A stretch of DNA of 64,000 nt from Cycas panzhihuaensis (Eukaryota; Plantae; Cycadophyta), in contig CM041465.1 of the NCBI GenBank assembly GCA_023213395.1, positions 179,187,741 through 179,251,740 on the forward strand, in the 5' to 3' direction. The number at the start of each line of letters is the position of its first letter. Position 1 is the stretch's first letter. Below the pieces are notes generated by a model. The model had not been told where the DNA came from. It did not search any database and was given only the letters and a program-made list of their open reading frames with translations. Shown here piece by piece: positions 7,251-62,446 of the stretch. The position numbers were made by a program, and so were the translations under genes.

Positions 7251-7275
7251 AGATAGAGTATATATTTCAGACATC

Positions 7276-11845: not shown

Positions 11846-11851
11846 AGGAGA

Positions 11852-17424: not shown

Positions 17425-19410
17425 TGTAAAGAAAATAAAGAAGTCAAGATAATGGCAAAAACATAATATGGTTAATTTAGATAATTGTGAAGATGAAGAA
17501 ATAACATTGACAGGAATCTTATGAATAAAATGAGTAGGATTAAAACATACAAAAACATAAGAATCATTAGGTAGAATTAGTTTACCTTTAAAAAATTTTC
17601 ATTCATTAATAATGCTTAATATATAATTTATAAGATACTATACACATATATACAAAATGGGATTGATAATGATTTATAACTAACTTGTAACTTCCTTGAT
17701 GCTTATCATTATATTAAATGATAGCCCTATAAGTCACCAAATATTCTTCTAACTCGTCATTATTATTAGGATCCTTGACATAAATATTAATTTGACACTC
17801 CTCCTTACTATTTAAATCATTGTATTTGATGCTAATATGTAATTTAGATTTGCCAAATTTGTCCCTAACTAATGGTTTGGTGAAGATATTTGGCAATCAC
17901 TCTTATAGGATTATATAAGAGCTCAATCTCTCCATTTTATATCTAATCCTAGAATAAATAGTGATGCGTCTTAATATGTTTGGTGAAAGTATGGAACATC
18001 AAACTCTTAGTAATCTTCAATAGACTCTAATTATCACAGTAAAAAGGAGTTGCCTTATCCTCATAAAGTCCCAAACCACCAAGGACCTATCTCAATGAGA
18101 TGGACTCGTATGTTGATATAATTATAGCTTTGTAATCTACCTCAATAGATGATAATGCAACATCAACTTCTTCTTGTTGTTCTAAGTAACAACAATAGAG
18201 CCCAAACTAAAGTAATGTTCTAAAGTGAACCTTCTACTATCAACACGTTTAGACCAATTAGAATTTGAATACCCTTCTTGCCTAAAATTATCATTCTAGC
18301 TAAATTATAATCTATAGTTTAGTATTCCTTACAAATATTTAAGGATATTCTTTGTATGTTTTTAATGGATTTACTTCATCTCTACCATGAACCTCAACAC
18401 CATAGCAAGTGTAAAGGATATATTAGGCCTATTTGTAGTCAAATAAATCAAGCTAGAAACTGGTCGCCCGTATATAGTGCCATCTATATGATCTTCATCA
18501 TATAGACCTATTAATTTTAGATCTATCTTTAAGGGGATTAGGAAAAGTTTATAGTACTTCATTCTAAATTTTATTAAAAATTTCAATCATACTTAACCTA
18601 TGAAATGATTATTTTTCTAGGCTTTTTCTAAACTTCCACTCTTAAAAAGTAGTGGAGCAGTCTAAGATCTATCATCTCTAATGTTCTCATAAGATCATCC
18701 TTTAGGTCTTCAATCTTTGAGGTAATATTACGTGTAATCACAAGATCATCCATATACAAATGATAAAGATGACTAAATATTCACCTTCAAATTTGATATA
18801 TAAGTTTGGATCAACTGGTGATCTCTCAAACTTGTTATTTAGAAAATATTGATTTATCTTTAAATATTAAGCTCTTAAAGCCTATTGTAAGCTATACAAA
18901 GATTTCTTCAAATAACATATAAAATATTCTCCACATTTTACAATATATCTAGATATATACTCTATATAAACCTCCTCCTCAAAATCCCCATTTAGAAAGA
19001 CACTTTTGACATCAAGTTAGTATAACATCCATTTAAGCTGAGTAGTCATTACTAGCATTAGTCTAACCATCACCATCTTTACTACTAGAGCAAATGTCTC
19101 TTAGTAATTAATACCTTTGATCTGCTTGAAACCCTTCACTACAAGTCTAACTTTGTATTTATCAATTGCGCCACCAGATATAAATTTGGTATTATAGACC
19201 CATTTACATCCAATCGCTTATTTACCTACTGGTAAATCAACTAAGTCCCAAGTTTTATTTTGCTCCATAATATAGATCTCAACTTGCATAATTAGTCTCT
19301 ATTTTTACTCCTAATATACCTTCTCAAAACTCAAAATCTTATTATCATTAAGTATGTCTACCATCAAAGTAAATTTGACCATCTTAGATTTCATCCTTGA
19401 CTTATGTTTT
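17425..19410 (-). mobile_element. Element C copy 1: Copia RT-RNase H, PPT and 3' LTR (continues at 30965-31610 after Gypsy D)
   Basis: LIYLTTNRPNISF and MPNIFTKPL remnants in the ORF track; PPT (rc ctcctcctt) 17798-17806; LTR begins TGTCAAA at 17797 on the minus strand; left boundary approximate. Confidence 0.8.
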
Positions 19411-30964: not shown

Positions 30965-33900
30965 GTTTCCCTTCAGTTTCAAGTAATTGAGTATTTTTTA
31001 TGGTTTTAACATACTATTTAGAAAGTTTCTTAGTAGGTGGAGTAATCTTGAGCTATACTTTAAGTTGTTATTTTTAGTATTTTAATACTCCTCCACTACT
31101 TTTGATTCTTACTTAGTATTTGTCTCAACATGCTACTATCTTAAAGTGTTATACTCAGGCTATTCGTTAGGCTATTCCTTGATTTGCTTCTTTTTATCTT
31201 GCTATATCTTAAAAGTATTTGAGTCAGTAACCTACTTATCAAGTTCTTCAAAGATGACATCCTAATCTCAAGTTGTATATGCCTTTCTACTCACTAACTC
31301 AAATATCCAATGCACTTTACTTTCTTTATTGTAACTGATGAGGATACACTTAAAACGTTTATTATTATTATTTTGATATTTCTCTTTTAGAACACACACA
31401 CACACACACACACATACACAAAATGCTCCTAATGATTTTAAGATGGCTCACTATAGATTTTCTCCTTGGCTAGGCTTCTTTTAGTGTCATACTTCATCAA
31501 AATCTTATTGGTGAAATATGTTATCATCTAAATAGCTTTAACCTAAAAGGACTCTCAAAGATTCCTTACTTTCATCATTAACTTGACCTTTTTTACTAAA
31601 GTACCCTTCATGTTTAATATATAATATATAAGTTACTACACACACACACACACATAATATGATTTATAATGGTCTATAATTGATCTATAACTATATTAAC
31701 ACTTGCCATCACATTAAATAATGACCCTATGAGTCACTAAATATTTTTCTAACTCGTCACTACTATTGGGACCCTTGATATAAATATTAGTTCTAACACT
31801 CATTTTTAATATTGAAATCATTGGATTTAATGCTAATATACAATTTGGATTTATCAAACTTGTCCCTAATTAATAGCTTGGTGAAGATATTTATCAATTA
31901 TTCTTTAGTAGGCTTGTATAAGAGCTCAATCTCTCCATTTTGGATCTACTTCAAGGTGAAATAGTTATGCACCTTAATGTGTTTGGTGGGAGCATGGAAT
32001 ATCATACTTTTAATAATCTTGAATAGACTATCATTATCATAATACAAAGTAGTTTCCCCTTCCTAATGAAGTCCTAAATCACCAAGGACCTATCTCAATG
32101 AGATGGATTCATAAGTTATTATAACTATAATTTTATTCTGTACCTTAATAGATGATAATGATACATTCAATTACTTCTTATTATTCTAAGTTATAATAAT
32201 ATAAATTAAACTAAAGTAATATTCTAACATAAACCTTATACTATTAACACATCTAGCTTAATTAGAATCTACATACTCTTCTCACTTAAAATTATCATTT
32301 TAGCTAAACTATAATCCATAGCTTAATACTCTTTACAAATATCTAAGGATCTTCTATATATGTTTTCAATGGATTTACTTCATCTTTGCCATAAACCTTA
32401 GTACCATACCTTATATAAAGGATATATTAAGCCTATTTGTTGTCAAATAAATAAAGCCAGTAATTAGCTACCTACATATAGTACCATTTATCTAATCTTA
32501 ATTATCTAGATCTATTAATTTTGAATGTCTCCATGGGAACCAAGGAAGGTTTATAATCCTAAATTTTAAATTTCTTAAAAATTTTTCATACATACTTAGC
32601 ATATAAAATGATTATTTTTCTAAGTTTTTTTCCAAGCTTTCACTTATAAAAAGTAGTGGATTAGTCCAAGATCTATCATCTCAAATGTTCTCTTAAGATC
32701 ATCCTTTATGTTTTCAACCTTTGAGGTATCCTTACCTATGATCACAAGATCATCTATATATAAAACCATAAAGAAGATTGAATATTCACCTTTAACTTTA
32801 ATATATAGGTTTGGATTAACTAGTGACCTTTCAAACTTGTTATTTAGAAAATATTGATCAATCTTTGAATACTAAGATCTTAGAGCCTATTGTAAGCTAT
32901 ACAAATCTTTCTTCAAGTGACGCATAAGCTATTCTCTATATTTTAATATATATCTAGGTGGCTACTTCATATAAACCTCCTCCTTAAGATCTATATTTAA
33001 GATGGCACTCTTGATATTAATCTAGTATAACAACCATTTAAGCTAATTAATTATTACCATCATCAATCTAATCATCACTATCTTTACTACTAAACTGAAT
33101 ATCTCCTCATAATTAATACCTTTGATATACTTGAAACCCTTTATTATAAGTCTAGCTTTATATTTATCAACTCAACTACCAGATTTAAATTTGATCTTGT
33201 AAAGCTATTTACATCTAATCACTTATTTACTTACATGTAAATCAACTAAGTCATAAGTTTTGTTTTTCTCCGTAACATAAATTTTAGTATCCATAATTAT
33301 TCTTTATTTCTTCTCCCAGTATTCCTTTTTAAAACTTAAAATCTTATTAACATTAAGCATATCTATCATTAAAGTAAATTTGACCATCTTGGGTTCCATC
33401 CTTGACTTGTGTTTCCCTTCAATCTTAGGTAATTAAGTTTCTTATATGGTTTTGAAATACTATTTGGAAAGTTTTTTGGTAGATTGATCAACCTTAGTTT
33501 ATACTTTAAGTTGTTATTCCTAAGCATCTTAATACTTCTCCTCCTCTTTTTTTATTTAACTTTTGGTTCCTACTTAGTATTTAGCTCAATAAATTATTAT
33601 CTCAAAGTACTATACTCAAGATATTCCTCAATCAACTTTGTTTTATCATGTTATATCTTCAAAGTATCTAAGTTAGTAACCTACTTGTCAAGTTCTTCAA
33701 AGATAATATCCCAATCTTGAGTTGTATATACCTTGCTTATCACTAACTCAAATACCTAAGATACTTTACTTTCTTTATTGTACCTGATAAGGATACACTT
33801 AGAACTTTTATTATTAATTTTTTGATATTTCTTATTTAGAATGTGTGTGTGTGTGTGTGTGTATTATTCTCAATGATTCTAAGATAGCTCACTATAGGCT

Positions 33901-35273
33901 TTCTCCTTGATTAGGCTTCTTTTGGTGTCATATTTCAAATACACTTTATCAAATTCCTATTGGTCAGATATATCATTGTATAAATAGCTTTAGCTTAGAA
34001 GGAATCTAAGACATTCTGTACTTTCATCACTGGATTAACCTTTTTGAATAAAGTCATATTCATGATTGATATATTAAGTACAAGCTACTATATATAGATA
34101 GATAGGATTGATAATGGTCTATAATTGATTTATAAATGCCTTTACACTTGCCATCATATTAAATGATGACCCTATGAGTCACCAAATATTCATATGACTT
34201 ATCACCATTGCTAGCATCCTTAATATAAATATTAATTTTAACATCCCCCTTTCATGTTTAGATCATTGGCTTTAATGCCAATACACAATTTTGATTTGTC
34301 AAATTTATCCTTATCTAATAGTTTGGTGAAGATATTTGTTAGTTACTATTTAGTAAGCTTATACATGATCTCAATTTCTCTATTTTAGATCTAGACCTAG
34401 ATGAAATAGTGATGCACGTTGATGTGTTTAGTGGAAGCATTGAACATTAGACTCTTAGTAATATTTAATAGACTTTAATTATCATAATACAAAGTAGTTG
34501 CCTCATCCTAGTGAATTCCCAAATCATAAAGGACCTATCTCAACAAAGTGGTCTTATAAGTTGCCACAACTATAACATTATATTATATCTTAATAGATGA
34601 TTATGTAATATTCAACTATATTTTATTATTCTAACTGGTAATAATAGAACCCAAACTAACATAATATTCTAAATTAAACCTTCTACTACCAACACATCTA
34701 GCCCAATCAAAATATGAATACCTTTTTTGCCTAAAATTATCATTCTAGCTAAACCCTAATCCATGGTTTAGCATTTCCCAGAAATATCTAAGGATCTTCT
34801 TTGTATGTTTCCAATGGGTTTGCACTAACTTTGTTATGAACCTTAGCACCATATCAAGTGAAAAGAATATATAAGCATATTTTTAGTTGAATAAATCAAG
34901 CTAACAACTAGCTACCTTTATATAGTGTCATCTATCTAATCTTTATCATTTAGGTCTGCTAATTTTGAATCTGTGTCCATGGGGATTAGGGTAGGTTTAT
35001 AGTCCTCCATTCTAAATTTCTTTAAAATTTTTCATGCATATTTAGCCTATAACATAATTATTTTTCTAGGCTTTTGCCAAACTTCCACTCCTAAAAGGTA
35101 GTGGAGTAGTCAAAGATCTATCATCTCAAATGTTCTTTTAAGATCATCCGTTTAAGTTTTTCACTTTTCAAGTATTATGATCTCCTAATGTCATATATTT
35201 ATAAAACCATAAAGATGATCGAGTATTTACCTTCAACTTCTATATATAGGTTTACATCAATTGGTGACCATTC
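30965..35273 (-). mobile_element. Element C tandem copies: end of copy 1, copy 2 (~31611-34060) and start of copy 3, each IN C-terminus-RT-RH-PPT-partial U3
   Basis: LTR-start/PPT junctions at 31798 and 34243 repeat that at 17797; period ~2.44 kb; RT/RH segments colinear. Confidence 0.85.
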
Positions 35274-35609
35274 TGTTGGGAATAATCCCAATGTTTGTGC
35301 ATTAGAGCGCTTAGGGCCCCTCAAAGCCACCTTTGAGGGCCCCTAGGGCACCTTGAGCCGTTCAATAGCCGCCCGGACCGACCAGTCATGTGAGGTACGT
35401 ATCACCGCTATTTATTTTTTATATTTTTTCAAACTAACCTTATTTGTTGTGCAGCTAGGGTGATGGCCCCCGACGCCTCCCCGAATTCTCTATATAAGGG
35501 TTGGGAATACCTCCATGGTGTTTAATAACACCACCACTCTTTCAGAAATTGCCGTTGTACTCAAGATGAAAGTGTCGTGATGTCCTGCTCTGCTCCTCCG
35601 GCTCCATCA
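35274..35609 (+). repeat. 5' LTR of element G
   Basis: TGTTGGG...CATCA; TATA box ctatataag ~35490; hairpin ccctcaaag-ccac-ctttgaggg. Confidence 0.95.
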
Positions 35610-36242
35610 TTTGGTATCAGAGCTACGTTGTCTATTTTTTGGTTTTGGTTGCTCAAACGTCCGACGGAACATAGTTATATGACTGCTCGTTGAGATTCTA
35701 GCGAGCTCACCGATCTACTAGAGAAGACGGATCTGGATTCCATCCACTGTGGAGGAAGCTCTCCCGCTCGGAAGTTTGCTCTCCATACGGAAACCAGGTT
35801 CTTCGTTTCCGTTTTTATATTTTTCAACATATAAATAAAAGAAATTTTTTTTGATATATGCTTTAGCTTGATAGATCTGTAGTTTGTGATCCTCTGTGTT
35901 AGCCTAGCATCCCTCAGTTTTCTCATAACCATCCCGCAATCAAAGTGTATCTGCATATTAGCCCTCTCTCTATTTACTACATACTCGCTGCCATTATTTA
36001 ATCTTGGCGTTCAGGCTCTCGTTTTGCGATTCAGGCTCTCGTTTCTTCTCATCTTTGTGTCTCCTTTATGCTTTCCGCCCTTACCTAAGATCGCATATCC
36101 AGCGTATCGCCTTGGGAAAGCATACTCTCCGTGCTAAGCCTCTGTCAGTTATCTGCGTTTGTAAACACCTGCTCTCTACCATTATCTCCGTCCGTAAAAC
36201 GTTCTGTTTGCCTCCTTATTGCGTCGCCGCTATCGGCGCCTG

Positions 36243-36437
36243 TCTGTTTCTGCGTCTCTCTAAGATCTCCGTTTGGATTCCAATCAGCGTATGATTTGAT
36301 CTTCGTCTTGATATTGTTTCTGTTCTGCATCTCTCTAAGATCTCCGTTTGGATTCCAATCGGCGTATGATTTGATCTCCGTCTTGATATTCTTTCTGTTC
36401 TGCGTCTCTCTAAGATTCTGTTTGAATTCCAATCGGC
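36243..36437. repeat. 75-bp tandem repeat (~2.6 copies) in the leader of G
   Basis: tgc(g/a)tctctctaagat recurs at 36251, 36326 and 36401. Confidence 0.92.
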
Positions 36438-36456
36438 CCAATCGGCACGCTGCATT

Positions 36457-36740
36457 TTATCTTATCATCCTTGATACAAGCTGAGCTCCTGTTTATTGTT
36501 TTCAGCCTTTCTGTTTTCCGTGTAGGTCATATTGACCATTGCTGCATTCATTACGATCCCTCTTATTGTTACGGTTTGCGTTTATTTAGCGCTGTGTCTT
36601 ATCTTATCGTCCTTGATATTGTCAAGCAAGCAAGCTGAGCTCCCGTTTATTGTTTTCAGCCTTTCTGTTTTCCGTGTAGGTCATATTGACCATTGCTGCA
36701 TTCATTACGATCCCTCTTATTGTTACGGTTTGCGTTTATT
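36457..36740. repeat. ~153-bp tandem duplication in the leader of G
   Basis: caagctgagctcc...ggtttgcgtttattt at 36477 and 36630, nearly identical. Confidence 0.92.
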
Positions 36741-38509
36741 TATATATTGCAGCTTATATATTGCGCACTTATATTGTATTCCATTTTTTGCATTCGCTCT
36801 TTATCGGCTTTGTATTATTTTGGTTTTATAGAAGTTTGAAAAATAAATTTGTTATATTTTTTTAAAAATCCGGTCTTAAAGGTATTAAGTTCTGTTTTTA
36901 ACTCGACGAGCGAGTTCACCCTCTTGGCATCGGAGGTTTCCGTTATCTGACTGGTCTTGGGTTCAATCCCAGCTCAGTCCCTCTTCAGACCCGATTTTAA
37001 AGAAGTTTATCAATTTTAAACCTTATTTTTTTTAAATTTTATTTTTCCATAGTGTTATTGGCGTTTTTTTGGCCATAACTTTTCTTTGGCTCATCGGTTT
37101 CAGACGAAACCTATGCCAATAGATCACAAATTTTTCGTAGATTGATTTCGACTAGTCATAAGACAAATTTGGTGCCCATTTGATCTCGTTTCGACCTTTT
37201 TAACATTGGACTTTCGAAATTTCAGCATTTTTTGCATTTTTAACAAAATCGGTTTTAGAACTGGCTGTCATTTACTTTTGGTAAACTGTTTTGTATCTGA
37301 ATTTTTTCTATAGTGATCTACGTCATATAGACTCTAATACCCATCTTTTACTTTAATTTTTTGACTTCATTTTTACTAATATTTTAATCGCTAAAATAAG
37401 AAAATTAGTTGTTTTTGCCTGTTTCTTGAACATTCTCCATAAAGACACTTGTCACATTTTTCACTATAACTTTTATAATTTTTATCAGATTTCATTTCCG
37501 TCAGCTTTGTTGGGAAGCTGACTCATTTCTCTTCACTGTGATATATTTTTTCATATATTTTGACATATTTTGCTTATATTTCAAATCAGCTAAAGTTGAG
37601 GTATTTTATTGGCCTAAATCTGTTGTTTCTTACACTTGTTTAATATATTCTTTCAACATTTTTAATTGGCAGAATATTAATTACTTCATCAATAATATTT
37701 AATCATTTTTTAAACTTTTCTAAGGATTAATTAGTATTTTTATGCAATTTTTGCCTACCCTGCTCCTGTTAGGCTCCATAAGGAGGTCCTTTCCTTTGCC
37801 TCATTCAAAACGTGATTTATTGGTATCCATTTTCAAAACCATCTATTTTATTGGATTCACATTTCAGCAATCTACATATTGATAAAATTTTAAGCTATTC
37901 TGACCTCATTCAATATAGTTTTCAATCTGTTAAAGTTGAGTATATATATTCATCCTAACAAGCTTGTCTTCTTTCAAAATTGTAAAGAAAACTCTAGTTC
38001 ATATTTCCTTGTTTACTCAAGTTTCTGCTTGATCTTTCTACAATCACTTTACATTATTTTTGAACTAGCATTTGTTTATAAGGCAATACATAAAAGTTGT
38101 TCTTAAAAGAAGTTTTTTTTTACATTGAAGATTTATTATTCATTTAAGAAATTGGCATCTGTTTGAAAACTATCTATTCTCAAAAGTTTATTTTTAAATC
38201 TTGCATAAGTGAAAAGTTTTGAGCATCATTACTTCCTGTTTGATTGTTTTACTTTAAAAGTGTATCAAAGTTCTTCTTCATTATTGGAAAATATCATCCT
38301 TCTTGCACTTATAAAAGGAAAATTGCATTTCTTTTCAAAGGCATCTTATATTTGTTTGAAGGACATTATATTTTTTTTGAAAAAAAGCAAAAAGAGTCTT
38401 TGTAAAAGTTTTCATTTCATCTTGCTTAGAAGCATTTTATTTTTTCAAAGGAATTTATCTTTTTCTAAGCAAGACCACATTGCTAAATAGATTAGTTTTC
38501 ACATTAAAT

Positions 38510-38976
38510 AAGATAATCCCGAATTGAACCACACTTTTTACCAGCCTTGCAAGGGGAACGGTTAGGACCCCTGAAGTTACCACCCCGCACACGCTAATCG
38601 GCCTACTCATATTGGATGAGGACAGCCATTAGCTATCAGGTGTATACGGTGGCAGGCTGAGGTGCAGAACCTTTTCTTTTTATGGTGTTTGGAGACCAAG
38701 GCTAGACCTGGAGAGGGTGAGTGCCTTTGGTTCAAGAACCTTCACCGCTAGATCTGTCGTTAGGCATAAATCCGGCGCAGGTGGACCAACAATTCAGGGG
38801 GGTGTCAAAACCTTCTTAGCAGCCCACGTACTGAGGTATATAGAGCCTAGCGCTCAGTACCGGTATAACGGGTCCCTGTTTTGCCATCGTAAGCGGGCGC
38901 CATTGATGAATAACAGCAGAAGGTTTCCCAGGAGAAACATAAACTTAGAGCCTAGTAGCCTTTCAGGTCCTAGTTC
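38510..38976 (+). ncRNA. Candidate conserved structured RNA (IRES/packaging/ribozyme-like; function unknown) upstream of gag in element G
   Basis: GC-rich island in an AT-rich leader with many nested complementary segments; homologous to 6785-7250 with compensatory differences. Confidence 0.65.
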
Positions 38977-39109
38977 ATTTGTTCAAACTTTTGAAAACCT
39001 TGGGATATATATTTGGAAATAAGTTCTTTCATTTAAGTTCTTTCAATTTTTTACATTCAAATATATTTTGCTATTGCATTTATCATATTTTATACAACTT
39101 TAATTTAAA

Positions 39110-42100
39110 ATGACATCTAGTTTTGGGAATATGATTATTCCTAAATTTGATGGAAATATTTTTCTTAACTGGAGTAGGAGGATGAGGCCCATCCTCATAG
39201 CAAATGAAATGTGGGATATAGTGAGAAATGGTTACAATGACTTAGGATCAAATCCAACCGATAATCGAGAAAGCTACATACAAAGAAAATATCAAAAGAT
39301 AATGAAGCCTTCGCCCTTATGTTTTGCGCTCTGGAAGACCATGTTTTCCCCCGCGGTAGTGAATCCATTAAGTCCAAAGAGGCTTGGGATACTTTACAGC
39401 TTATATACGAAGGGGCCGTGTCCTCTAAACTACAAAACTTAAGAAGTAAGTTCGAAAATTTACGTATGATGCCTCATGAATCAATAACTGAATTTATGAC
39501 CAAGATTCAAGACATAGTTACCAAATGAGGTCCCTTGGGGATACCTTAACCGAACAAAGAGTTGTTGAACGAATCCTTCATGTGTAGAGCCGTTAGACGC
39601 TGAGATGGTAGCTACAAGTATTAGTGTATCTAAAGACCTAAGTACACTTAAAATAGAACAACTTCTCGCTATGCTCATGTCCATAGAAGAGCAACAAGCT
39701 GCCAACGAAACCTTAGAACATGCCTTTGCTACAAAGGCCAACATTCAATCTAATCCTCAAGATGGCACTTCAAAACAAAATGAATCTCCTCTAAGGCGAA
39801 AAGATGAAAACCCTAGAAATGAACCTAGACAAAATCCTCCACGATACCAAGCTCCTCATAATAGACAAGGACGACCCCCACAACATGAAAATTCTCCAAG
39901 ACATTCGAACACTCAAAGAAACCCTAACCAACGAAGACAAGTTGAAAATCATTCTTGCTGTCCACATTGTCATGGGAACCCACAACCTTCTAGAACACCT
40001 CAAAACTATCGTGATCAACCAAGAAATAATCATACTCAATTCTGTGAGGAAAGGGGGAGACCTTTCAACCTTGATCACTCTCCACCAAGGAATCAAAATC
40101 TTAATTATGGAAAAAGAGATCAACTATATTGCACTTATTGTCGTAGAAATGGTCACACTGAAGATAAGTGTTTTTCCAAACATGGACCACCCTCTAGAGG
40201 ACATGTGTCAAATACATCAGAATCTAAAATTAATAATAGGTTATTTCTATCTAGTTTTTCAAACCAGGAAGAAGAGGATGATAGTTGGTACATTGATTCT
40301 GGTTGTTCCACCCACATGACCCATAAAGAACAATTATTTCAAACTTTGGATACAAATAAGAAAGGGTCTATTATGTTTGGAGACAACACTTCTCACCAAT
40401 CGATTGGAAAAGGTAACATTGCCTTATTGACTGATAGTGGTGAATACAAATATTTAAATGATGTTCTATACGTCCCTGCTTTAAGGAAAAACTTACTATC
40501 GGTAGGACAGATGATGGGACAAGACTATAAAATAATTTTTGACAACGGCGAATGTGTCATTAAAGACAAATGACAAAATGAAGCGATTGTTGCTAGGGGT
40601 ATCATGACTAAAGATCGTTTATTTAAACTTACTATCACCCCCTCAGAAACATATGCCCTTAGAACCATAACTACTATGGATAGTGACCTATGGCATCGAC
40701 ATTTCGGTCACCTTAATTATACAAGTTTAGCCCTTATGAAAAGATTAGATATGGTTAATGGCTTACCCCCTATTCATGTTAACAAAGAGTTGTGTGAGGG
40801 ATGCCTTCTTAGAAAACACCATAGAGAAATTTTTCCAGACTTTAGCCATCGGGCATCTACCCCTCTTCAACTCATCTACACAGATATTTGTGGTCCAATG
40901 ACCACTCCCTCCTTGGCAGGTGCCAAATATTTCCTTACATTTATTGATGACTTTACAAGAAAGACTTGGGTGTTCTTTCTCAAATACAAATCTGATGCTT
41001 TTGACCACTTTGTTGACTTCAAAACCTTCGTTGAGCGACAAAGTGGATATCATATCCTCTCCTTAAGATCAGATAATGGGGGAGAATTTACCTCTAATAT
41101 CTTCAAGGATTACTGTATCCAACATGGGATTAGGCGACAACATACCAACCCCTACACCCCACAACAAAATGGTGTAGCTGAAAGGAAAAATAGAACTATC
41201 GTAGAAATGGCACGTTGTATGCTTAAAGATAAAAACTTAGGCCATGAATTTTAACAAGGCACCATACCAGTCTACTTACTTAATCGATGTTCCACAAAAG
41301 TCATAGGGGAAGACACCAGAAGAAGCATGGACAGGTTATAAACCTAGTATCCGACACCTTAAGGTATTTGGCTGTTTAGCCTATGCCCATGTCCCTGACC
41401 AAAGAAGAACCAAATTAGATGATCATAGTGTAAAATGTATCTTTATTGGATATAGTGAATCATCAAAATCTTACAAAGTTTATGATCCCAAATCCCAAAA
41501 AGTTATACTGAGTAGGGATGTCAAATTTTAAGAAGACACCTACTATCAAAATAATCACAAACAACAAAATGACATTACTATTAAGTTTAATGCATCAAAT
41601 ACATCCAAATATGTGCCACCTATGTGGAGAAATTCTCCAGAAACTACTAGGAAAACAACATCACCTCAACCACCATCACAACCGCTATCCAAATGGGTTC
41701 AACGCAATCATGACTTAGGAAATATATTAGATAACAATCGAAGATCTACACGTTCACACAAAGTTAACTTTGCTCTAATGAGTAAGTTACTTGAAAGTCA
41801 TGAGCCTCAAACCTTTGGTGAGGCTAATCAACATGAGTGCTGGCAAAAAGCCATGCAAGAGGAATATAAATCTATCGTTAAAAATGATACTTGGGAACTT
41901 GTAGACTTACCACCAAGAAAGAAAGCCATTGGAACCAAATGGGTTTATAAGACTAAGTTCCACTCTGATGGATCAATTGATAAATATAAAGCTCGTTTAG
42001 TTGCCAAAGGATATGCCCAAAAAGAAGGCATAGACTATACTAAAACGTTTGCCCCAGTTGCTAGAATGGAATCAGTTCGCATGATAATAAGTTTAGCCGC

Positions 42101-43310
42101 CCAAATGGGTTGGCCTGTTTATCAAATGGACGTAAAAAGTGCTTTTTTAAATGGTTATATCTAAGAAGATATCTATGTCTCTCAACCCCTCAGTTTTAAA
42201 GTCAGGGGGGAAGAAAACAAAGTGTATAAGTTAAAGAAAGCGTTATATGGTCTAAAACAAGCACCTAGGGCTTGGTATTCCCGTATAGACACATATCTTA
42301 AAGATCAAGGGTTTGAAAGATCTCAAGTAGATCCAAACCTATACACCAAAATTAAAGGAAATTCGATATTGATCGTAGGACTTTACGTAGACGACTTAAT
42401 TTATACCGGAAATGACTCCCAATTTTTAAGTCAATTTAAAGAAGCTATGTATAAGGAATTCGAAATGACAGACTTAGGTCTTATGCACTACTTCTTAGGA
42501 TTGGAAGTGTGGAAAGATAAACAAGGAATATTTATATCTCAACGTAAATATATATTAGACCTTCTATAAAGATTTAATATGACAAACTATAAACCATTAT
42601 CAATACCAGCAGAAATTGGAATTAAACTCTCTAAGACAGATGACTCAACCTCAGTTGATCCCACTCACTATAGACAACTGATTGGTAGCCTACTTTATTT
42701 AACCTCTACTCGACCTGATATAACATACTCTGTAAGTGTTGTATCTAGATTTATGCAGGATCTAAAGACATCCCATTGGCAAGCTGCTAAAAGAATCCTT
42801 AGATACCTTAAAAGGACTTCAGACTTTGGACTATACTACAAACCTACATCCGAGTTTGCTTAAAGTTACACAGTTGATTAGGTGGTGATATTGATGATAG
42901 AAAATCTACTTACGGTTATGCATTTAGTATGGGATCACAGCAGAGCTTGGAGTACAAAGAAACAAAATACCGCTTCCTTATCCACAAGCGAGAATATAAA
43001 GTCGCGATCTAGGAGCCCGTGAATCAATCAGTTAAGAAGACTCTTACAAGATTTTCAAATTAAACAAGAAGGCCCCACTAAAATTTGGTGTGATAATCGA
43101 GCTATTCAAATGACAAAAATCCAAAGATTCCACGGTAAAACAAAGCACATTGAAACTCAATACCACTTCATTCGGAACTTGTACAAGCGTAAGAGATAGA
43201 GTTGACTTATCAGAATATCAAGATCAAACAATGGATATTTTACAAAGGCCTTGGGAAAAATCAAGTTTGAAAAGTTCAGAGATGATTTAGGAGTCATACA
43301 CATTGGGCTT
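39110..43310 (+). pseudogene. Copia gag-pol polyprotein of element G (stops and frameshifts)
   Basis: Gag IPKFDGNIFLNW; zinc knuckle CTYCRRNGHTEDKC; protease WYIDSGCSTHMT; integrase WHRHFGH..CEGC, DICGP, LRSDNGGEF, PQQNGVAERKNRT; [29 protein letters not shown]; RNase H TKHIETQYHFI. Confidence 0.95.
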
Positions 43311-43320
43311 ATGGGGAGAA

Positions 43321-43649
43321 TGTTGGGAATAATCCCAATGTTTGTGCACTAGCGCCTGTGGCCCCTCAAAGCCACCTTTGAGGGCCCCTAGGGCACCTTG
43401 AGCCGCTCAATAGCGGACCGACCCAGGTCATGTGAGGTACGTATCAACTTATTTATTTTTATATTTTTTCAAACTAACCTTATTTGTTGTGCAGCTAGGG
43501 TGATGGCGCCCGACGCCTCCCCGAATTCTCTATATAAGGGTTGGGAATACCTCCCTGGTGTTTATTAACACCGCCACTCTTTCGGAAATTGTCGTTGTAC
43601 TCAAGATGAAAGTGTCGTGATGTCCTGCTCTGCTCCTCCGGCTCCATCA
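43321..43649 (+). repeat. 3' LTR of element G
   Basis: Matches the 5' LTR, followed by TSD cattc. Confidence 0.95.
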
Positions 43650-43654
43650 CATTC

Positions 43655-43915
43655 AAACTTATTATTTAAAAAATATTGACTGATCTTAGAATACTAAGCT
43701 CTTGGAGCCTATTATAAGCTATACAAATCTTTCTTTAATTGACATACAAGTTGTTCTCTATATCTTTCTATATATCTATGTGGATACTCCATATAAACCT
43801 CCTCCTTAAGATCTCTATTTAGGAAGGCACTCCTAGCATCAAGTTGGTGGAGCTATTATCATCACAGGTCTAATCATCATTATCTTTGCTACTAGAATGA
43901 ATGTCCCCTAGTAAT
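43655..43915 (-). mobile_element. Continuation of Copia C copy 3 RT after the G insertion
   Basis: Colinear with 32832-33110 and 18829-19110. Confidence 0.8.
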
Positions 43916-45949
43916 TATCAGACCATTTTCTTACCATTCTAAAAAGAGGAGTTTTTAAAATTTTTAAGTTTATGTACAAGGATATGAATACAATGAGGGG
44001 GTAGTAGTTATAGGATAGTTGGGTTCTTGGTACTCTAATTGTAAATTGTTATATATAAGTGTCTAAGTTTATCAAATAAGATTAAGTTTATTGTAGGGCT
44101 TAAAGATTCATAAGTATTATTTTCAATATGGGAGGTTTTAATGTGGGAAGCATTGACACATGTAAGAAGAGCTGATGAAGGGAGTTCCAATGCAAGGGAA
44201 AGAAATGGAATAACTTATATTCTTGTAACTTATGTTCCCACAACTAAAGTTCCTATAGATAACTAAGAGTGTGTGTTCAAAGTAATTTTTAAGTGATTAG
44301 TACGAAAGTCACTTGCTAGAAAGCTAAAATAAAATAGTGGGTCCTACTTTGTAACTTTTAAGTGATTTATGGAAAGTGATTCATAGGAAATAAATATCTA
44401 TTATCAAGCCTACAAAATGTTCTCCCATAAAATCACTCTAGCTTGAAGACACGTTTCAAAAATGCTCATCTCATATGAAGTTATTTTGCAAGAAAAACAC
44501 ATATTAGAGAAGGAAATGGATACTATAATAAACCATTCTAGCAATCCACTTTTCCCCAATGCAAGGAGGACTCTTCATTAAGTTTGATCACTAAAGTAGG
44601 AACCAAAAAATACCTTCAATATGGGAAGTTACATGTAATACAGAAAATTAAAATGTTTGTGACAATTAAACATTAAGGTTTTCTTTAAAAATAGTTTTGT
44701 AGATAATTTAGGATGGTTACACATAACTAATACTATAAAATACATCACAAGGAGGAGGAAAGATAGGGGGGTAAGAGGACACCCAATTTGGTTAGTTTAG
44801 TATACCTAGTAACAACTGAGATTTCTACTTTTATTCTTCTTTAATTTGATCTTTCTAGGGTTTCTTCAAAATTTGTATAGCTTATGGCTTTTAAGTTTCT
44901 ATCTACAAGCAGTATGCATGTCATTGCCTCTAAAGGATAAAACCCCATAGTCAATCTGGGGTATTTCATAGCTTTAAACTCTTTATGTTGTATATATAGC
45001 TTATTGTATTCTATATAAAATAGTTTTAAGTTATTAATTTTCTATTAAGTAAAACATAATTATACTTAGTTTACCCAACTATCATATTTAACTTTAGGAA
45101 ACCTAATTTTCTCTTTCTTAGTCTACTCAAATTTGGTGCTATCCAACTAGTTTACTAATATAGTAAAAATCTCATACTATGTATGTGATCCTTTGAAGTC
45201 AGATTTGATTTTGGTCCTAGGTATACTTCTCTTCATTCTTTATTTTCTGTTTTCATCACTTTAAAAAATAGAAAAGTATACAAAAATATAAAGAATCCAA
45301 AATAACATATTTAATCATAATGTTATATTATTATTGTATATATTAAATTTTTTGAGCCAAAAGTAAAGAACAAACTGGAGTAAATCATTCTATAGTTATA
45401 CCCCAATAGTTATGTCTAATGATCATTGAATAATTATAAACCACTTAAATAATAAATTGGGGAGGGCATAACTTCAGAGGTCAATAAATTTGGTGACCAT
45501 ATTAAGGATGATCATCTCCATATCATTTCTATTCTAGTTTTTCATTTATTATAGGAGTCAAGCTTACATTTTATGAAATTAGATAGAAAGCTAAATAGGA
45601 CTTATACCTATTCTCTTAAGGCTTAAGGAGTTAACAAAAATCTTAAGATTCATCCTTAAAAGAAAAACTATTTCCATTGATTTCTTATGTAAAAGGGAAT
45701 TAAAGAGGGGCTAAATTTTTAAGAAGCCTCGGCATCACTTTAACTCTAGCCTTTCCAACTATAACACAACAACTAAATCCACCATAAAATCTACTTCTTT
45801 GGGTGTAATGTAGTCCACTTAACTTGCAAGGGCAATAGATTCCAATCTCATATAAAGCTTTAGAGGCCTGCCCCAAACTCAATGGGGATAGGTCAATGAC
45901 AATAGAATAATATATTGAGAATTTCTTAATGATATGCATGACATTTAAT

Positions 45950-53979: not shown

Positions 53980-56900
53980 CTAGCTGTTACAGATCATATC
54001 CTTCTCCACCAGAACCATAAGATCCCTAGGGAAGTCACTCTTCCACACTTGACCTTCCCGGTGCCTTGCCCCCCAGTTTGCCAAAAAGTCAGCTGGTTTA
54101 TTACCTTCTCTCAAAGTATGCCTTATACGGGCTTCTGCCTGTCCCTTGATGATCTCTTTGGCATCATTGAAAAGGGACTGGAATCTCCAGTCTGGAAGGG
54201 CCTCACCTTTCAACGTCTTAATCACCACCTCTAAATCCCCCTCTAATAACAGACGTTGAATATTTCCTTCAACTGCTAGGTCTAGGGCTTTAAACATAGC
54301 TTGCATTTCTGCGTAGTGGTTTGCCTGACATTCATAGTAGTTCGCGAAAGCCCTGATAGGGGAACCAGTGCTATCTCTACATATACCCCCTCCACCATCT
54401 TTCCCAGGGTTCCTTTTAGCAGCCCCATCAAAATTAACTTTGCTCCATGTCTCCTCAGGAGACTGCCATTCTGACTACGGGCCTCACGCCTCAAATACAG
54501 GAAATATACCCCATTTACTTAGAATCCTGCTCTCTATCAAGGAAAGACGTTTTTCTTTCACATTTCTAACATTTTCCCTAATGTCCGAGCATATTCTATT
54601 GAAAATAGCAATCTGGTCCATCTGGTTTTCCTGAAAAAAACACCGATTCCTCTCTTTCCAAATATTCCAAGCCAAAATTGGGAGCGCAATCTTCCAGATC
54701 TTTCGAGTTCTCGCTCGAAAGGGCTAAGCCAGGCAAGCCATAAGTCAAAAGTCTTTTTTGAAAATGTCCAGCAAACCTCTAATTTTTCAAGTAACATCCT
54801 CCAAACCTCTCTTGTAAGAGCACACCCAATGAAGATGTGGTCCATGGATTCCTCCTCTGAGTAACATAAAATGCATCTATTTGCCAACTCAATACCTCTC
54901 TTCTTAAGATTGTCTATAGTGAGGATTTTATTCATGAGGCAAGTCCACTAGAAAATAACAATCTTAGGAATAATAGGAAGCCTCCAAACCCCTTCAAGGG
55001 TTGGATTCCTCTGATCCCCTCTAGTTAAATAGAGGAAATGGTATCCTTGTTTAACGGTGTAGTCCTCGGACGGGCTGAGAGGCCACACAACCACATCTGG
55101 CGAATTCATTATGGGGATATAATTCTTACGAAGAATCCTTTTTAGCTTGTTTAGGCCCTCTTGCAATCTTTCTCCTTGAATTTCCTCCAGAGACTTCCAA
55201 CGCCTGTTTTTGCCACTCCCGGTCCAATAATCCTTAACCTGAGTGCCATATTGCCTGACACAGAGCCCCATAATAGGTGCCAGGTCTAGATAGTCCTTAA
55301 GTGCATTATCGTAGCACCATGCATCCTCCCAGAACCTTATGGAGTTACCATCTCCAAGTCTCCATTTTAAGCCATTCCTTATAGCTCTCCGTGCTTTAAG
55401 AATGCTTCTCCAAACAGTGGATCCGATCTGCGAAGCGTCATTCTGAATAAGAGAACCTCCTTGTATGTATTTTCTGGTCAGGATCTTCTCCCAAAGTCTC
55501 TCACCCCCTTTAAATAACCGCCATCCCAACTTTGCCCCTAGAGCAGCGTTGAAAGGAGGAATTCTTCTCAGGTTAAGACCACCAGCACATTTCGGGGTGC
55601 AAACTTTATTCCAGCTTACCAGATGTATTCTATCTTTGCTCTCTTTCCCCAACCAAAGGAATCTCTTCTGGATGGATTCAATAATGTTTGATATGCTCGC
55701 CGGAACTCTGAATATAGATATCCAAAATACTGGAATGCTCTGCAGTGTCGTAGTGACTAGTTGGAGCTTCCCAGCTAGACTAAGCAGGGCACCTTTCCAG
55801 CCTGCCAACTTCCTTTGCATCCTATCAATGAGGGGGTTCCACATGTCCTTGGACATTTTCCCTACAAAGAGTGGCAGACCAAGGTAGATTATGGGAAGCT
55901 CTTTAATGCTCATCTCTAGGATTCTACTTATCCTGCCTTGAACATGGCCTGGGGTATTTATAAAGAAGACACTACTCTTATTCAAGTTTATTTTTTGGTT
56001 CGTGGCCTCCTCAAAGTAGCCCAATATCTCTTTAAGTTTAGAAGCCTCTCTCAAAGAAGCCTTACCTAAGAAGATGTTATCGTCCACGAATTGGTGATGG
56101 ACCACTGTATCCACACCAGATGTCGGCTTTATACCTTTTATGGCTCCCTGCCTTCTGACAGACTCCAGGTTTCTACCCAAAAGCTCAGCCATTGTAATAA
56201 GCAAGAAGGGGGAGAAAGGGTCACCCTGCCTCAAACCCCTAAATCCTAGGAAGAACTTAGAGGAAGAGCCATTTATGATGACAGAGAATTGCGGGTTACC
56301 AATGCATAGCTTTATCCAATCCCACCAAGTCTCCTCAAAACTAAATGCACCAAGGCAATCTATCAAACAGTCCCAGGAGACCCTATCAAAAGCCTTCATG
56401 AAGTCGAGCTTGATAAGCATCACAGGCTCCTTTCTCTCCGCCGCTGAATGGATTGTTTCATGGACAACGATATAGCCATCATATAACTTCCTGCCCCGAA
56501 GGAAACCATCTTGATTCTGGGAAATAATATTTGGCATAATTTTCTTCACCCTATTCACCAAGACCTTTGTTAAGATTTTTTATTTAACGTTGCAGAGGCT
56601 AATGGGGCAGAAGTCCTCCATCCTTTTTGCCCCATCTTTTTTTGGAATAAGGACCAGGAATGTGGTCTGTCATTCCTGCAGGATCTTTCTATTTGCTTGG
56701 AACTCCTTCATTACTTCCATGAGATCCCCTTTAATAATGTCCCAGAATTCTTGAAAGAACCCCGGGGGAAATCCATCAGGACCTGGTGCTTTATCTTTCT
56801 TCATACCGAAGAGAGCCTCCCTGACCTCGTCCTGAGTGAATGGGGCTGTAAGCTGGGCATTCTGCTCTTTGTTCACCAAGCATGGTATATTATTTAGGAA

Positions 56901-58164
56901 ATCTTTCCTCCTTTCCTCATCCCCGCCTAGTGGTTCAGTAAAAAGGTTCTTGAAATATTCGCATGCCAGCTCCTTCATGTCTTCAACCGAGCTGACAGCG
57001 GATCCATCTTCCTTTTGAAGACTATTAATTCTATTGCTCGCCCTATATTTTACTGTAGTCATATGAAAAAATCTAGTATTTCTATCGCCTTCATCCAACC
57101 AGAGGGCCCTAGATTTTTGTCTCCAATGGATCTCCTCTCTGTTGAGGATCTCCTCCATAGTCTCAGTGAGCTCCTTCTCAGCCTTGTCAAGCTCCGCTGA
57201 TCTTCCCATCCGTTCAATTTGATCCTCTATACTTTTCAAATCCTAGATAGTTTTATCCTTTTGTTCATTTATGTTTTGTAACACTTCCTTGTTCCAAGCC
57301 TTTACTTGTCTTTTGACCCAGTCCAGCTTCTTTGAAAATCTATACATAGCATGTCCTCTGATGTCAATGCCCCACCACTCCTCAATTTTTTTCTGAAGGT
57401 CTGGATGGCGAAGCCACATTAATTCGAACCTGAAGGGGGCCCCCATAAAATTCCCCGAATCTGAAAATTGCAACAAGAGGGGCGAGTGGTCAGAGCTGAT
57501 CCTCGGCAATGCCTCTAAGGCATAGTCTGAGAAGCATCTCATCCAATCATAGTTAACCAAAGACCGTCGACTTGATTTGAATAAGGCTGTCTCCCAACCT
57601 CTTATTGGACCAGGTGAAGGATGCCCCCCTGAGATTAACATCTTCCAACCCCCCCTGTTAGAGGAAATCGCCAAACTTAGCCATACTAGTGGTCCACCCC
57701 CTGGTGCCTCCTCTCTTGTCACCAGGGCATAAAGCTGAGTTAAAGTCACCCGCCAACAACCATGGGAGCCGGCAATCCCTGTGTACCTCTATCAATCTAT
57801 CCCAAAGCCTCTTCCTGGCTGTTTGAAGAGTTGGGGCATACACATTAATAGCAAACCATGTAATGTTGTTGCTTTTGTTTATTAGCTGAACCGAAATGAA
57901 GGATTCGTCAATCAGAAGGATTTCTCCTAACCAAATAGATGGGTTCCAAAGCACCATTAACCCCCCGACTCCTTGGCCATAGTCCCTCTCTATGCCATCT
58001 GCATGCTTCCAAATTTTATTTCTGATCTTTGGTCCATTTTCCTTGCATAGCTTAGTTTCTTGTAGAAATAATAGATCTAATTGATGTCTAATTCTCATAT
58101 CCTTAATGATTCTTTACTTTGAGGGGGCATTCAAACCCCTAATATTCCATGACATAATTTTCAT
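53980..58164 (-). pseudogene. L1 ORF2: AP endonuclease - RT - zf-RVT - RNase H (several stops/frameshifts)
   Basis: MKIMSWNIRGLN, FLQETK, WLLAGDFN, SDHSPL, KAPGPDGF, KLDFMKAFDRV, GLRQGDP, QFVDD, YLGLPL, RCILC..EESMDHIF..C, NFDGAAKG, EGD, HTLREGNKPADFLAN. Confidence 0.95.
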
Positions 58165-59536
58165 CGCTTCTTTCTCAGTTTCCAAACCTCAGTCGTATCC
58201 CCTTTTGGGGGATCTCTGCCTGTTGTACTGGATCTAAGAATAGGTCCTTCGAGGAAAGCTTCCTTTAAAGTTTTTTGGGTGCCTAGATCTACTTGGGCAG
58301 CCGAATCTTTCTCCTTTTGCAGCCTAGATGGAGGTCTTCCAACCTTCTTCTTGGCTCCCACGTCAGGCATCTTCTTCTGTGACAGATGCGGTAATGGATC
58401 AAGGGTTGACCTACCTAGTTCCTTAGGCACCTCGGCACCGTCAAGCCCCTGATTGACTTCAACTTCTGAGGCGATTCGCCTCGATCCAAATGCATTATAT
58501 CCTTCTTCTCCTTCTACCTTAGTGGCCCGTGCAGGTCAGTGTGGACTGGAGGACCTTCACCGTAGTGGGAAAAATCCCCAACTCCAGCCACTCTAGCTGA
58601 ACCCTCCGGAGGCACAAGGACCTGTGCCACTTGATCATCTTCCTCCAAGAGCGTGTCCTCCTCGTTTGGGTCAAAACCCAAGTTCGGGGAGGAGGCCTCA
58701 GCGGCCTCTAATGGTGCTAGGCATTCAAAGCCCTCCCCTTTTTCTTGGGGGTTTGACTCAGGTGGATCTTCTTCTTTCTCCTCTTTAGAGGGCTGCACTC
58801 CTGGGCACTTTTAGGGCAGATGCCCCAAATTTCTACAGGTTGAACATCTGAAATGGTCCAACTCATAGACCAACGGTTGAACCCAACTCTTATCTGGAAA
58901 ATCCATCTAAATATCATCCAAGAGAGGCTTGTCTAATCTTGCCAAAGCACAAATTCTGGCATTTATAAGCCTGCTCCTGTTCTTCGTCGCGGAGTCAACT
59001 GCTAATAGAGGGCCCACTAATTTCGCTATGCCTCTAAACACCTCAGGGTTCCAGTGGTGAAGGGGGAGGCACGGGAGTTGGATCCATATGGGAGCTTGTC
59101 TGATTTTAGGACTCGAGGGATTAAAGTCCCTATGCCATTTCTCGAGAGATAGGGCCTTTCTTCTGAACATCCAAGGAGCCCTGATCAGTATACTAGACAT
59201 GTCTTCATAAGAGGCGAATTTAAATAGCACACAGCCCTTAGGCATGGCTATTACCTCCACACTGCTCACAATTTTCTATTTTATCTTTGTCCATGTCCTA
59301 ATGGCTTCCAGCCCTAGTCTGGGGCCTGAGAATCTGCCCACCAGGCAATTCTCCCATAGTTTTTTACTTTTTTCCACCAAAGCCAGAGGGATCTTCAATC
59401 TAGCTTTGTTGTCCTCGAACATAGGTGTTAGGTCAAAGGATTCCTCGTCATTTGTTTTCAAAACATCCTAGTAGGTTCTCCCTAAAACCAAGTTAGGGTT
59501 CTAGTTCTGATTTAGATGGGAATGATCTGTTTCCAT
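58161..59536 (-). pseudogene. L1 ORF1 (DUF4283-type plant L1 ORF1), disrupted
   Basis: WENCLVGRF, LFKF, APWMF, APIWIQLPCLPLHHW, ARIC motifs typical of plant L1 ORF1; its TGA overlaps the ORF2 ATG. Confidence 0.85.
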
Positions 59537-62446
59537 TTTTTTAAAAATTCAGAACAAAGAAGAAAGCTCCAAGCATAAAAATAGTAGCATACCATTTCAA
59601 CTTCGAACTTGCTATCCGAGGGGATATTATCCAAGATCCTTGCTGTGTGCCCTATGTCCCTCTCCAAGAACCCTCTGACACCACAGATAGATCTGTTATA
59701 TTATCTGTTTGAGAAGCTATGGGACCCGTGTCCCTCCCCAAACCTCTTCAAGCCTGTTAGTCCCGCATCATCATGGCGGTGCACCTCTTTTTGGAGGTCT
59801 AACCCAGGATTCAGAGAGCCTAGCGTCCTCGGACGAGCTATAGCTCCATTAACCTGAAGATCCTATAAGCATCCTGCTCTGGCATCTTTACTTAACGAGC
59901 CGTATACCCCCTGGGTAATCACGCTATCATGCTGCCTATCCACAGTCTCTGCTTGAGCGACGAGGAGGATATGACTATTAGCTCGAACAAAGACCAGTCG
60001 GTCGGCTCTACCAACACCCTCCAAGAGACGCCGTGGTGTCCATGGCCAAGAATTTTCGATCCCCGTCTCCAACGAGCTGATCTCTAGCAGCCTCACGATC
60101 GCTTGGTAAGCCTGCAAACCCTAGCTTCCGTTCGTCGTCGCCATCACAACCCTATTTATGTGGATATTTTAAGATGATGTAAACATAAGAAATAAGAAAA
60201 AAATTATTTCTGGTTACCTTCACTAATATATGCTACAAACCTATAGAGGTAAATAAGATTCAGTTGGATTAGCCATCTTACCAAATTATAAGTAGTTATA
60301 GCATGATCATCAAATTGTTTTGAAGACTCAATATCTATTAGTAATGTAAAATGGACAATAGGTTTGTATTGATTAATATGAAGTAAAATAAAATTATATG
60401 TGTTATTAAGTGAACATGATATTTTGATATATTTATTTAAATTTAAATTTTTATATAGTTCATCAACAATTAGTCATATGGAGGAGCAAATATGACTAGA
60501 AGCCTAACACCTAAAAGGCTAAACTAATTTTTTAAAGGGCTACATAGTTTGTTAAGACATATTGATACTTTTTAGACTAGAACTTTTCACTAGAATATCA
60601 TATTCAAGTGCCATTAATTATATTGGAAAGAGAATTTTAAGGTAATCAAAATGAGTGGTTGCAAGATATATTCCAAAAATTAAATTATGGAGATTTTAAT
60701 AGATAAATTTGAGCATACTTACTTTGACATCATAAAAATTATAAAATTTAAGATTTTTCAGATCTATTTTGGTATTTTCTGATGTTTATAAAGGTTCTTG
60801 AGATCATGATGATGATATTGATGAGAGATAATAAAAGAAAAAAATAAGTTTGGTCTAAAATTAAATAGTTAAAGGCTCATTTATGATAATTTAAGGTTTA
60901 AATTAAATAAAGGTTAATAATGTGGGACATATTTGAAGTAAAATTTATTATGGAAATCTTAATACATGCTAGACTTGATTAATTCCCTTAGTACTTGACA
61001 TATTTAGTCTAGTTAAGAGCACTATAAATTAAATGTCATGACCACCTATTTATTAGACACCTATTTGAATTTATAAATGATGATTAGTGACACCACCGAA
61101 TATATTGATAAAAGGACTAATTTATTTGTAATGTTTGTTTATTAGATAGATGATGAGTTAATGACATTTTCTACCTATTTATAAGTCATAGAGAAGAAGT
61201 ATAATGTGTTGATTAATTAGTACTAAATTTAGCTATTGAGGTTATCTAATTGATATATGATATATGTTTATCATTGAGAAATATGACTTGTCATATATGA
61301 TAAGAGGTATAGGAATATATTATTTATATTACTTTATTATAACTAAATTGTCTTGGCCAAGTGGTACACCATATTCCTGGAGTTAACATATTTAGATGAT
61401 TAATTTATTGATGTTGATGAGTTATTTATTAGTTACTAAAAGAAAGTTGTAGATGTATGTATAAGTGTCAATGGAGGTAGCACATAAGTTATTTGCTCAT
61501 ACACAAGAGGCAAGATAAATGAAGCTACTCTTATGTAACATATAAATTATGTTATTATTCTTGTATACAAGAGGTGAGATTTTATGATATTATTATAACA
61601 ATATTTTATGTAATAACAAGTGTTATTTTATTTAGTGATGAACTGTATATAAGAAATATATCATAGAAAACTAGCAATTACAATAACTAGTTATCCATAT
61701 ATTTTAGTAGATGGTTATTATTTTATATAGACATTAGTAATTATTTTTATTCATGAGATTGTTAAGATAACACATTAACAATGTTGATTAATCATAGCTT
61801 TACAAGTAAAGATATAAAGTCATTAAAGAGAAACGTTTATATAAACATAACAAGTGAAAGTCATGAAACTAAGATTAGTTATGTGATTGATTGATGATTA
61901 GTATACAAGTATTTTATACATGTAATTATTATAATTGGTCATTACTGATCATAGATGACTACATGTTATTATAGGTTAATTTCTTATAGGAAACAAACAT
62001 GATGTTGATAAATTTATAGGTTATATATGTTACAAGTTGATATAATATATTATAGATTTGATAGAAATTTTAGCATATGGGAAAAGCAAAAGAAATAGAG
62101 ATGGAGGTTGAAGATGAAGAATTAAAGATTGAAGACATTAAATATTAAGGGGGAGTGTTAAACTATGTGATACTTTCGTATATCTAATATTTAATATAAA
62201 TAGTGGAGCCACATAAAATTCTACTCACCAAGAGCATTGATAGATGTAATATGCATAATTATTCATCTAAGTATCTTATTGGATGATGAAATAATGCAAG
62301 AGATATAATAGGCTATTCATGAGGTAATATATCTATAAATATATATGCATACTACTTAAGAATATGAGAAAGAAAAATTGACCTAGAAATGTAATTATTT
62401 AATATCTAAAGAGGAGCTCCAAACTCTAACCTTCTCCTATGGTTTT

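Follow-up and report, generated by a model that had tools for sequence, protein, structure and literature searches.

Two Copia retrotransposons of Cycas panzhihuaensis share, directly before gag, a non-coding block that is real and colinear in both and is the best-conserved nucleotide stretch of the pair. Both elements lie in the window, by which we mean the whole 64,000-nucleotide stretch of DNA that was analyzed; one of them, element G, is complete, and the other, element A, is old and heavily decayed. The core of the shared block (hereafter the island), about 300 nt long, has evolved more slowly than any coding part of the two elements. With a probability of roughly 0.35, we propose that the island would work as a cis-acting, psi-type signal for packaging or dimerisation on the full-length RNA. 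It is best explained as a candidate clade-wide trait, namely a selectively conserved non-coding cis element of long-leader Copia retrotransposons. The locus matters for two linked features: a non-coding block that is more conserved than RT and a 3.5-kb leader that is almost free of AUG.

Element G spans positions 35274-43649 on the plus strand, with its LTRs, target duplication, PBS, and gag-pol domains in place. The 5' LTR (35274-35609, 336 nt) contains a TATA-like box at 35492-35498 and is 92.6% identical to the 3' LTR (43321-43649, 329 nt), ahead of which lies a polypurine tract. The 5-bp target duplication CATTC flanks the element at 35269-35273 and 43650-43654. Between the LTRs, and like them on the plus strand, a PBS of the initiator-Met tRNA (iMet) type (35612-35623) is followed by a U-rich, weakly folding, AUG-purged leader (35626-38500), the conserved island core (38500-38800), the GC-rich 3' third of the island (38801-38966), and a weakly folding, AT-rich spacer of 143 nt with 21% GC and no ATG (38967-39109). 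The gag-pol region (39110-43320) encodes DUF4219, Pol_BBD, gag_pre-integrs, rve, and RVT_2 domains, and in-frame stops and a shift of frame interrupt it; the gag ATG, with an A at -3, is at 39110. A preliminary description of this DNA had reported a 3.5-kb leader and, before gag, a GC-rich island. We confirmed both: 3.5 kb separate the PBS from the gag ATG, and the island, whose GC content of 47-54% compares with 24-30% in the flanking sequence, stops some 135 nt short of the ATG. The helices that the same description proposed fall partly in the core (H1-H8) and partly in the 3' third (H9-H11). An ATG-less open frame of 55 codons (38949-39113) runs through the AT-rich spacer of G and stops at a TGA that overlaps the gag ATG (ATGA), an arrangement that may be due to chance.

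Element A is bounded by LTRs at 4892-5369 and 11851-12310, which are 79% identical. A colinear homologue of the island had been announced ahead of its gag, and we found it there, from 6776 to about 7250; the homologue of the core occupies 6776-7085 on the plus strand and shows heavy C>T and G>A change. The remainder of the two leaders is not alignable, as had also been described: outside the island, blastn between A and G recovered only the PBS region (23 nt, 5366-5388 in A) and short RT/IN stretches. To call the two Copia families "unrelated" was an overstatement, since the PBS, the gene order, and pol are common to both, with 40-48% amino acid identity in pol (IN/RT; tblastx between decayed copies). 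Gag has diverged far more than the island, with an identity of 44%. The comparison involves these two copies only, A being long dead, and the LTR identities of 79% and 92.6% put the post-insertion decay of A and G together at about 14%.

When A and G are compared by blastn, the island scores highest (241 nt, 69% identity, E 1e-15), the best match in RT having 149 nt, 68% identity, and E 8e-6. In a global alignment, the sliding identity per 120 nt tops out at 0.62-0.69 over 38460-38760; elsewhere, it reaches 0.57-0.63 in the RT cores, over a background of about 0.45-0.5. The preliminary description had put the conserved island at about 450 nt, which is right for approximately 38500-38800 but not for 38801-38966, where identity is 43%, i.e., background. 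The core is 68.5% identical between the two copies, or 83% when C>T and G>A changes in the old copy are ignored, with 12.5% transversions. The corresponding values are 57%, 72%, and 20.7% for the RT core and 51%, 64%, and 27% for all of gag-pol. Differences between the A and G islands are chiefly C>T (31) and G>A (35), and about one-third of the island's G and C positions were altered by such changes in A. Within the core, a 21-mer is conserved at 38625-38645 of G. A second PBS-like site in this 21-mer was considered but gained no support, as the 6-nt core that it has in common with the PBS is at chance level. Altogether, the alignment supports the presence of a non-coding block directly before gag that appears to be under unusual constraint.

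Recombination between co-packaged LTR retrotransposon RNAs is well known, and the island could in principle have no function of its own, being either a block exchanged by template switching or the youngest piece that the two elements have in common. Given some 14% of post-insertion decay, the divergence that is left in the island is indeed modest. Its borders are sharp, however: the leader just upstream is 53% identical and gag 44%, so that neither flank was transferred along with it. In addition, the GC-rich composition of the island is upheld in the young copy, G, within a U-rich leader. We therefore hold a block devoid of function to be highly improbable.

The island does not behave as coding sequence. 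Indels between A and G measure 7, 2, 1, 1, 3, and 2 nt, the core has stops in all frames and is crossed only by short ORFs, and a 101-aa ORF over the 3' half of the island is without a Pfam match, which together rule out a protein-coding exon. Captured fragments of host genes in the G leader likewise gained no support, since the ORFs of the leader have no Pfam match. In agreement with the earlier view that no known RNA family is involved, Rfam gave no match at the gathering score over the whole 64-kb window. When positions 38000-39500 were searched at E 10, nothing matched inside 38531-39500; the lone match that touches the island interval is a minus-strand CRISPR-repeat at 38498-38530 (E 9.6), which with 17 bits against a gathering score of 45 bits is noise. 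A tRNA scan of the window with ARAGORN found none.

Searches for relatives gave a similar picture at the nucleotide level. No third copy was detected within the window by nhmmer with a two-copy island profile. Exact-pattern scans of viral, metagenome, and genome contigs with three conserved island blocks returned isolated chance matches of the motif alone, those in genomes and metagenomes being a Pedobacter sequence and two unrelated IMG/VR contigs. The integrase of G retrieved no related locus among viral contigs. At the protein level, the closest relative in a gag-PR search stands at 37% (Ginkgo), and a search with the gag N-terminus returned no candidate. Between 45% and 68% of the 31-mers of this stretch are present in sequencing runs of about eleven organisms from 13 studies, which indicates that the element family is high-copy and common to related species.

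The preliminary description took the island for an RNA fold under selection. Every helix arm that it quoted is present in G where it had been placed, and the minimum-energy fold of G regains the helices of domain 1. Selection on the fold, by contrast, found no support beyond chance in tests of stability, consensus, or pair retention. The minimum free energy of the whole island, set against dinucleotide shuffles, has a z score of -0.47 on the plus strand and +0.40 on the minus strand. Three domains of G, cut at the closing helices of the preliminary description and thus with borders chosen post hoc, reach z scores of -2.3, -1.7, and -2.1. The last of these corresponds to the 3' third (38801-38966), which is not conserved in A, and domain 1 folds equally well on the minus strand (z -2.8). 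In A, the domain versions score -0.4 and 0.0. The RNAalifold consensus of A and G amounts to -26.6 to -30 kcal/mol, versus about -90 (-93) for G alone and -67 for A alone, which corresponds to an SCI of about 0.35, and it regains only H6 and part of H7.

We assessed pair retention with structures derived from G alone, against a null in which A's substitutions were permuted among positions with the same base. Of the 36 pairs of domain 1, 27 survive in A, where the null gives 25.0 ± 2.0 (P 0.23); of the 45 pairs of domain 2, 25 do so, where it gives 27.1 ± 2.4 (P 0.87). Substitution rates are equal at paired and unpaired positions of the island, and the A island is not more stable than its own permuted versions (z -1.0). 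For helices H1-H8, 37 of 48 pairs are kept against 29.8 ± 2.9 (P 0.009), but these helices had been picked with A in view. The claim that differences in A preserve pairing was not borne out: among the changed pairs of H1-H8, pairing is kept in 9 and lost in 10. Both sides of a pair changed three times in these helices, in each case from G:C to A:U by transitions of the deamination type; with about one-third of G/C positions changed, chance alone should yield a few doubles of this kind. G>A changes, by which a plus-strand pair is broken, stand at 6 to 3 relative to C>T changes, which leave a G.U. For comparison, the 282 conserved columns of G contain 218 chance stems of at least 5 bp; 84 of them are at least 80% retained in A, and 37 show at least one "compensatory" double change. 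This calls for caution in scans of deamination-decayed genomes, where G:C to A:U "compensation" and hand-picked helices are to be expected by chance.

Two details are compatible with a hairpin model, although they are anecdotes: in A, the stem of H6 is intact at all eight bases whereas four of the five in its loop differ, and H7 has lost one base from each arm in A, each from a homopolymer run. The A/G pair has little power to test a fold because much of the difference between the copies is neutral decay of a dead one; a conserved RNA fold of the island is possible. Long-range pairing of the island with U5/PBS was not above shuffled controls. By eye, no hairpin-loop palindrome common to A and G was seen; the palindromes present in G, such as 38750-38755 and 38897-38902, either differ in A or have no aligned counterpart there, as judged by eye from two copies. 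Only two blocks of the 5' UTR of G fold strongly, and the island is one of them (-45.6, -45.4, and -35.3 kcal/mol in three 150-nt windows), whereas the leader elsewhere ranges from -9 to -32 kcal/mol per 150 nt, even at 45-50% GC. The second such block, at 35670-35819 just past the PBS, reaches -44.9 kcal/mol per 150 nt and is not aligned with A.

We then consider the sequence that leads up to the island. The preliminary description assumed a long AUG-containing leader; that of G is instead strongly depleted in AUG. Its pre-island part (35626-38500, 2875 nt) contains 7 ATG, against 39.6 ± 5.3 expected from dinucleotide shuffles, among which the lowest count was 25 (500 shuffles). CAT, the reverse complement, occurs 77 times there, so the opposite strand carries 77 ATG. 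The shortage of ATG extends over all six 480-nt segments of the leader; no other of the 64 trinucleotides is as depleted (z -5.2), and CTG, TTG, and ATA, each one step away from ATG, rank among the most enriched. Ten uAUGs are found in the whole leader, three of them in the island. All ten have a pyrimidine at -3, and nine lack a G at +4. The uORFs are 2-14 codons long, save two of 38 and 46 codons, and the one nearest to the island on its 5' side terminates at 37880, leaving a gap of about 620 nt. The leader is U-rich and G-poor, and an avoidance of poly(A) signals, which we had considered, is accounted for by composition. The leader of A shows no purge (23 ATG vs 21 expected), which decay or a family difference could explain. 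A tandem duplication with a unit of about 150 nt (89-99% identity) occupies 36448-36742 of the G leader, and the uAUGs at 36291 and 36366, upstream of it, lie in similar repeated contexts.

Given the AUG purge, the weak contexts of the remaining uAUGs, and the mostly tiny uORFs, ribosomes appear to scan from the 5' end. This suggests that 40S subunits scan the G leader from its 5' end, and that ribosomes cover several kilobases in order to reach gag. A kilobase-scale, AUG-free 5' UTR is unusual in itself. Only if an RNA is scanned do its uAUGs have consequences, a reasoning that underlies the uAUG-insertion test on the HIV-1 leader, which is also without uAUGs and scanned (PMC3130279).

This bears directly on the earlier proposal that the island is most simply an IRES bypassing an AUG-containing leader. 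With such a cap-independent element, the island would be the point of ribosome entry, and the AUG-free spacer the way to the gag AUG. The layout is suited to it, with about 300-450 nt, several hairpin domains, then 143 nt of AUG-free spacer and an AUG in good context, and with a partner of host origin (ribosome, initiation factors), it would be understandable that the island is better conserved than Gag. In viral genomes, the IRES is typically the nucleotide stretch with the highest conservation. Picornavirus-type IRESs (about 450 nt) resemble the island in size, predicted domains, unstructured spacer before the start, and high conservation, but the island has no Rfam match and no covariation, and its upstream leader is purged of AUGs. 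The purge points to scanning: internal entry would make uAUGs irrelevant, so that 2.9 kb cleared of them, with those that remain in weak contexts and mostly heading tiny uORFs, counts against an IRES (by the logic of PMC3130279). The island itself holds three uAUGs, no Rfam IRES family matched even at E 10, and the SCI of about 0.35 does not point to a conserved multi-domain fold, in a comparison of two sequences with low power. An IRES thus appears very unlikely.

A ribosome shunt would be another way across such a leader. With the shunt leaders of the pararetroviruses CaMV and RTBV, G shares a long leader, a structured block, and an AU-rich, landing-like region before a long ORF. Shunt leaders carry many bypassed uAUGs and depend on a short uORF whose end lies just a few nucleotides ahead of the base of an elongated hairpin (PMC5902531). 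The few AUGs of G, and a nearest uORF that ends about 620 nt before the island, led us to reject a shunt of the pararetrovirus type.

The scanning evidence also weighs on a role of the island at the DNA level, where host transcription factors would bind it as an internal promoter or a downstream transcriptional enhancer. Ty1, with its internal promoter, and Drosophila copia, with an enhancer in its leader, provide precedents. Like the copia enhancer, the island would be a conserved regulatory block in a Copia-type leader upstream of gag, but its size is far greater, and 3 kb separate it from the promoter. Long exact blocks of its primary sequence are conserved without a sign of a fold, and substitutions are equally frequent at paired and unpaired positions, as a DNA element would have it; a host partner would here too account for conservation above that of Gag. 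The motif TATATATTT occurs past the island in both elements (39004-39012 in G, 7259-7267 in A), but DNA this rich in AT commonly contains TATA-like strings, and TATATATTT is not equally far from the gag ATG in the two elements: some 100 nt in G, some 15 nt in A. Dense constraint over about 300 nt also exceeds that of a usual promoter. Finally, the upstream AUG purge indicates that translated RNA spans the whole leader, so that a separate internal start is not required; the purge speaks against an internal promoter as the main route to Gag. We consider a DNA-level element unlikely overall.

Splicing signals were examined as well. A donor-like motif (38714-38722 in G, site 38717; 6992-7000 in A, site 6995) and an acceptor-like pyrimidine tract with AG/GT (38957-38968 in G, site 38966; 7240-7250 in A, site 7248) might bound an intron of about 250 nt. 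Alternatively, the donor-like site might bind U1 snRNP and protect the long AU-rich transcript from premature polyadenylation. Site 38717 is the only one in the 3.5-kb leader that agrees with at least 8 of 9 donor consensus positions, and it is kept in A; the candidate introns have similar lengths (250 nt in G, 254 nt in A), and the interior of the interval is poorly conserved in its 3' half. However, the interval is GC-rich, unlike plant introns, the acceptor of G has AG dinucleotides close upstream and failed the acceptor filter, and a donor-like hexamer is not rare by chance in 450 nt. Splicing would also leave the 215 conserved nucleotides upstream of the donor unexplained. A role in splicing or U1 binding is accordingly quite unlikely in our view. 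An intron comprising the whole leader was rejected, as it conflicts with an AUG purge over the entire leader.

We favor instead a packaging or dimerisation signal on the genomic RNA. Retroviruses and Ty elements keep such signals between the PBS and gag, and these leader signals are typically the most conserved nucleotide stretch of retroelements. The island occupies the same position, with the PBS at 35612-35623, the island at 38500-38966, and the gag AUG at 39110. It resembles the psi and dimerisation signals of retroviruses and Ty in this placement on the full-length sense RNA, in its several hairpins, and in its top conservation. It differs from them in that it lies 2.9 kb past the PBS rather than adjoining it, shows no conserved palindromic loop, and has a fold that is only predicted, while Gag is much more diverged than the island. 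This last difference means that a conserved host partner fits better than one encoded by the element, though the CCHC knuckle of Gag could serve as a conserved reader of the island.

From these observations, we infer a role of the island at the RNA level, together with a binding partner. The island would be carried on the sense-strand full-length RNA, where it would close the 2.9-kb U-rich, AUG-purged leader. The 40S subunits would load at the 5' end and traverse the whole leader, including the island, and then the AUG-free spacer up to the gag AUG; with this layout of purged leader and spacer, the island is not needed as an IRES. Lying between the PBS and gag, it may act as a psi-type packaging or dimerisation signal, and Gag/NC or a host factor bound there could block scanning and thereby switch the RNA from translation to packaging. 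More tentatively, a plant Copia clade may possess in the island a large functional RNA module of a kind so far undescribed, a structured platform for a conserved host factor at the end of a kilobase-scale, AUG-free scanning runway. It would decide between Gag translation and genomic-RNA packaging or gate the arrival of ribosomes at gag in some other way. Such a module would have no counterpart in Rfam. To our knowledge, how plant LTR retrotransposons split one RNA between translation and packaging is poorly understood, and the cis-acting RNA signals of plant Copia elements are almost uncharted. If the island is a packaging or translation-control module, it would offer a handle on the activity of a high-copy element family.

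The surroundings of G consist of further repeats. G sits inside a copy of another Copia-like repeat, whose RT is on the minus strand and whose sequence (17612-19409, 31610-33414, 34062-35267, and 43652-43917) resumes right past the 3' target duplication of G. This repeat has three occurrences in the window, two of them nearly in tandem at a spacing of 2445 nt. Farther downstream, a GC-richer block (54000-60000, 44-47% GC) contains a 537-aa RVT_1 ORF of the LINE type on the minus strand (54948-56561), the RT of which has its closest relatives in Logan contigs (52-63% identity), followed by Pinus taeda (about 30-39%).
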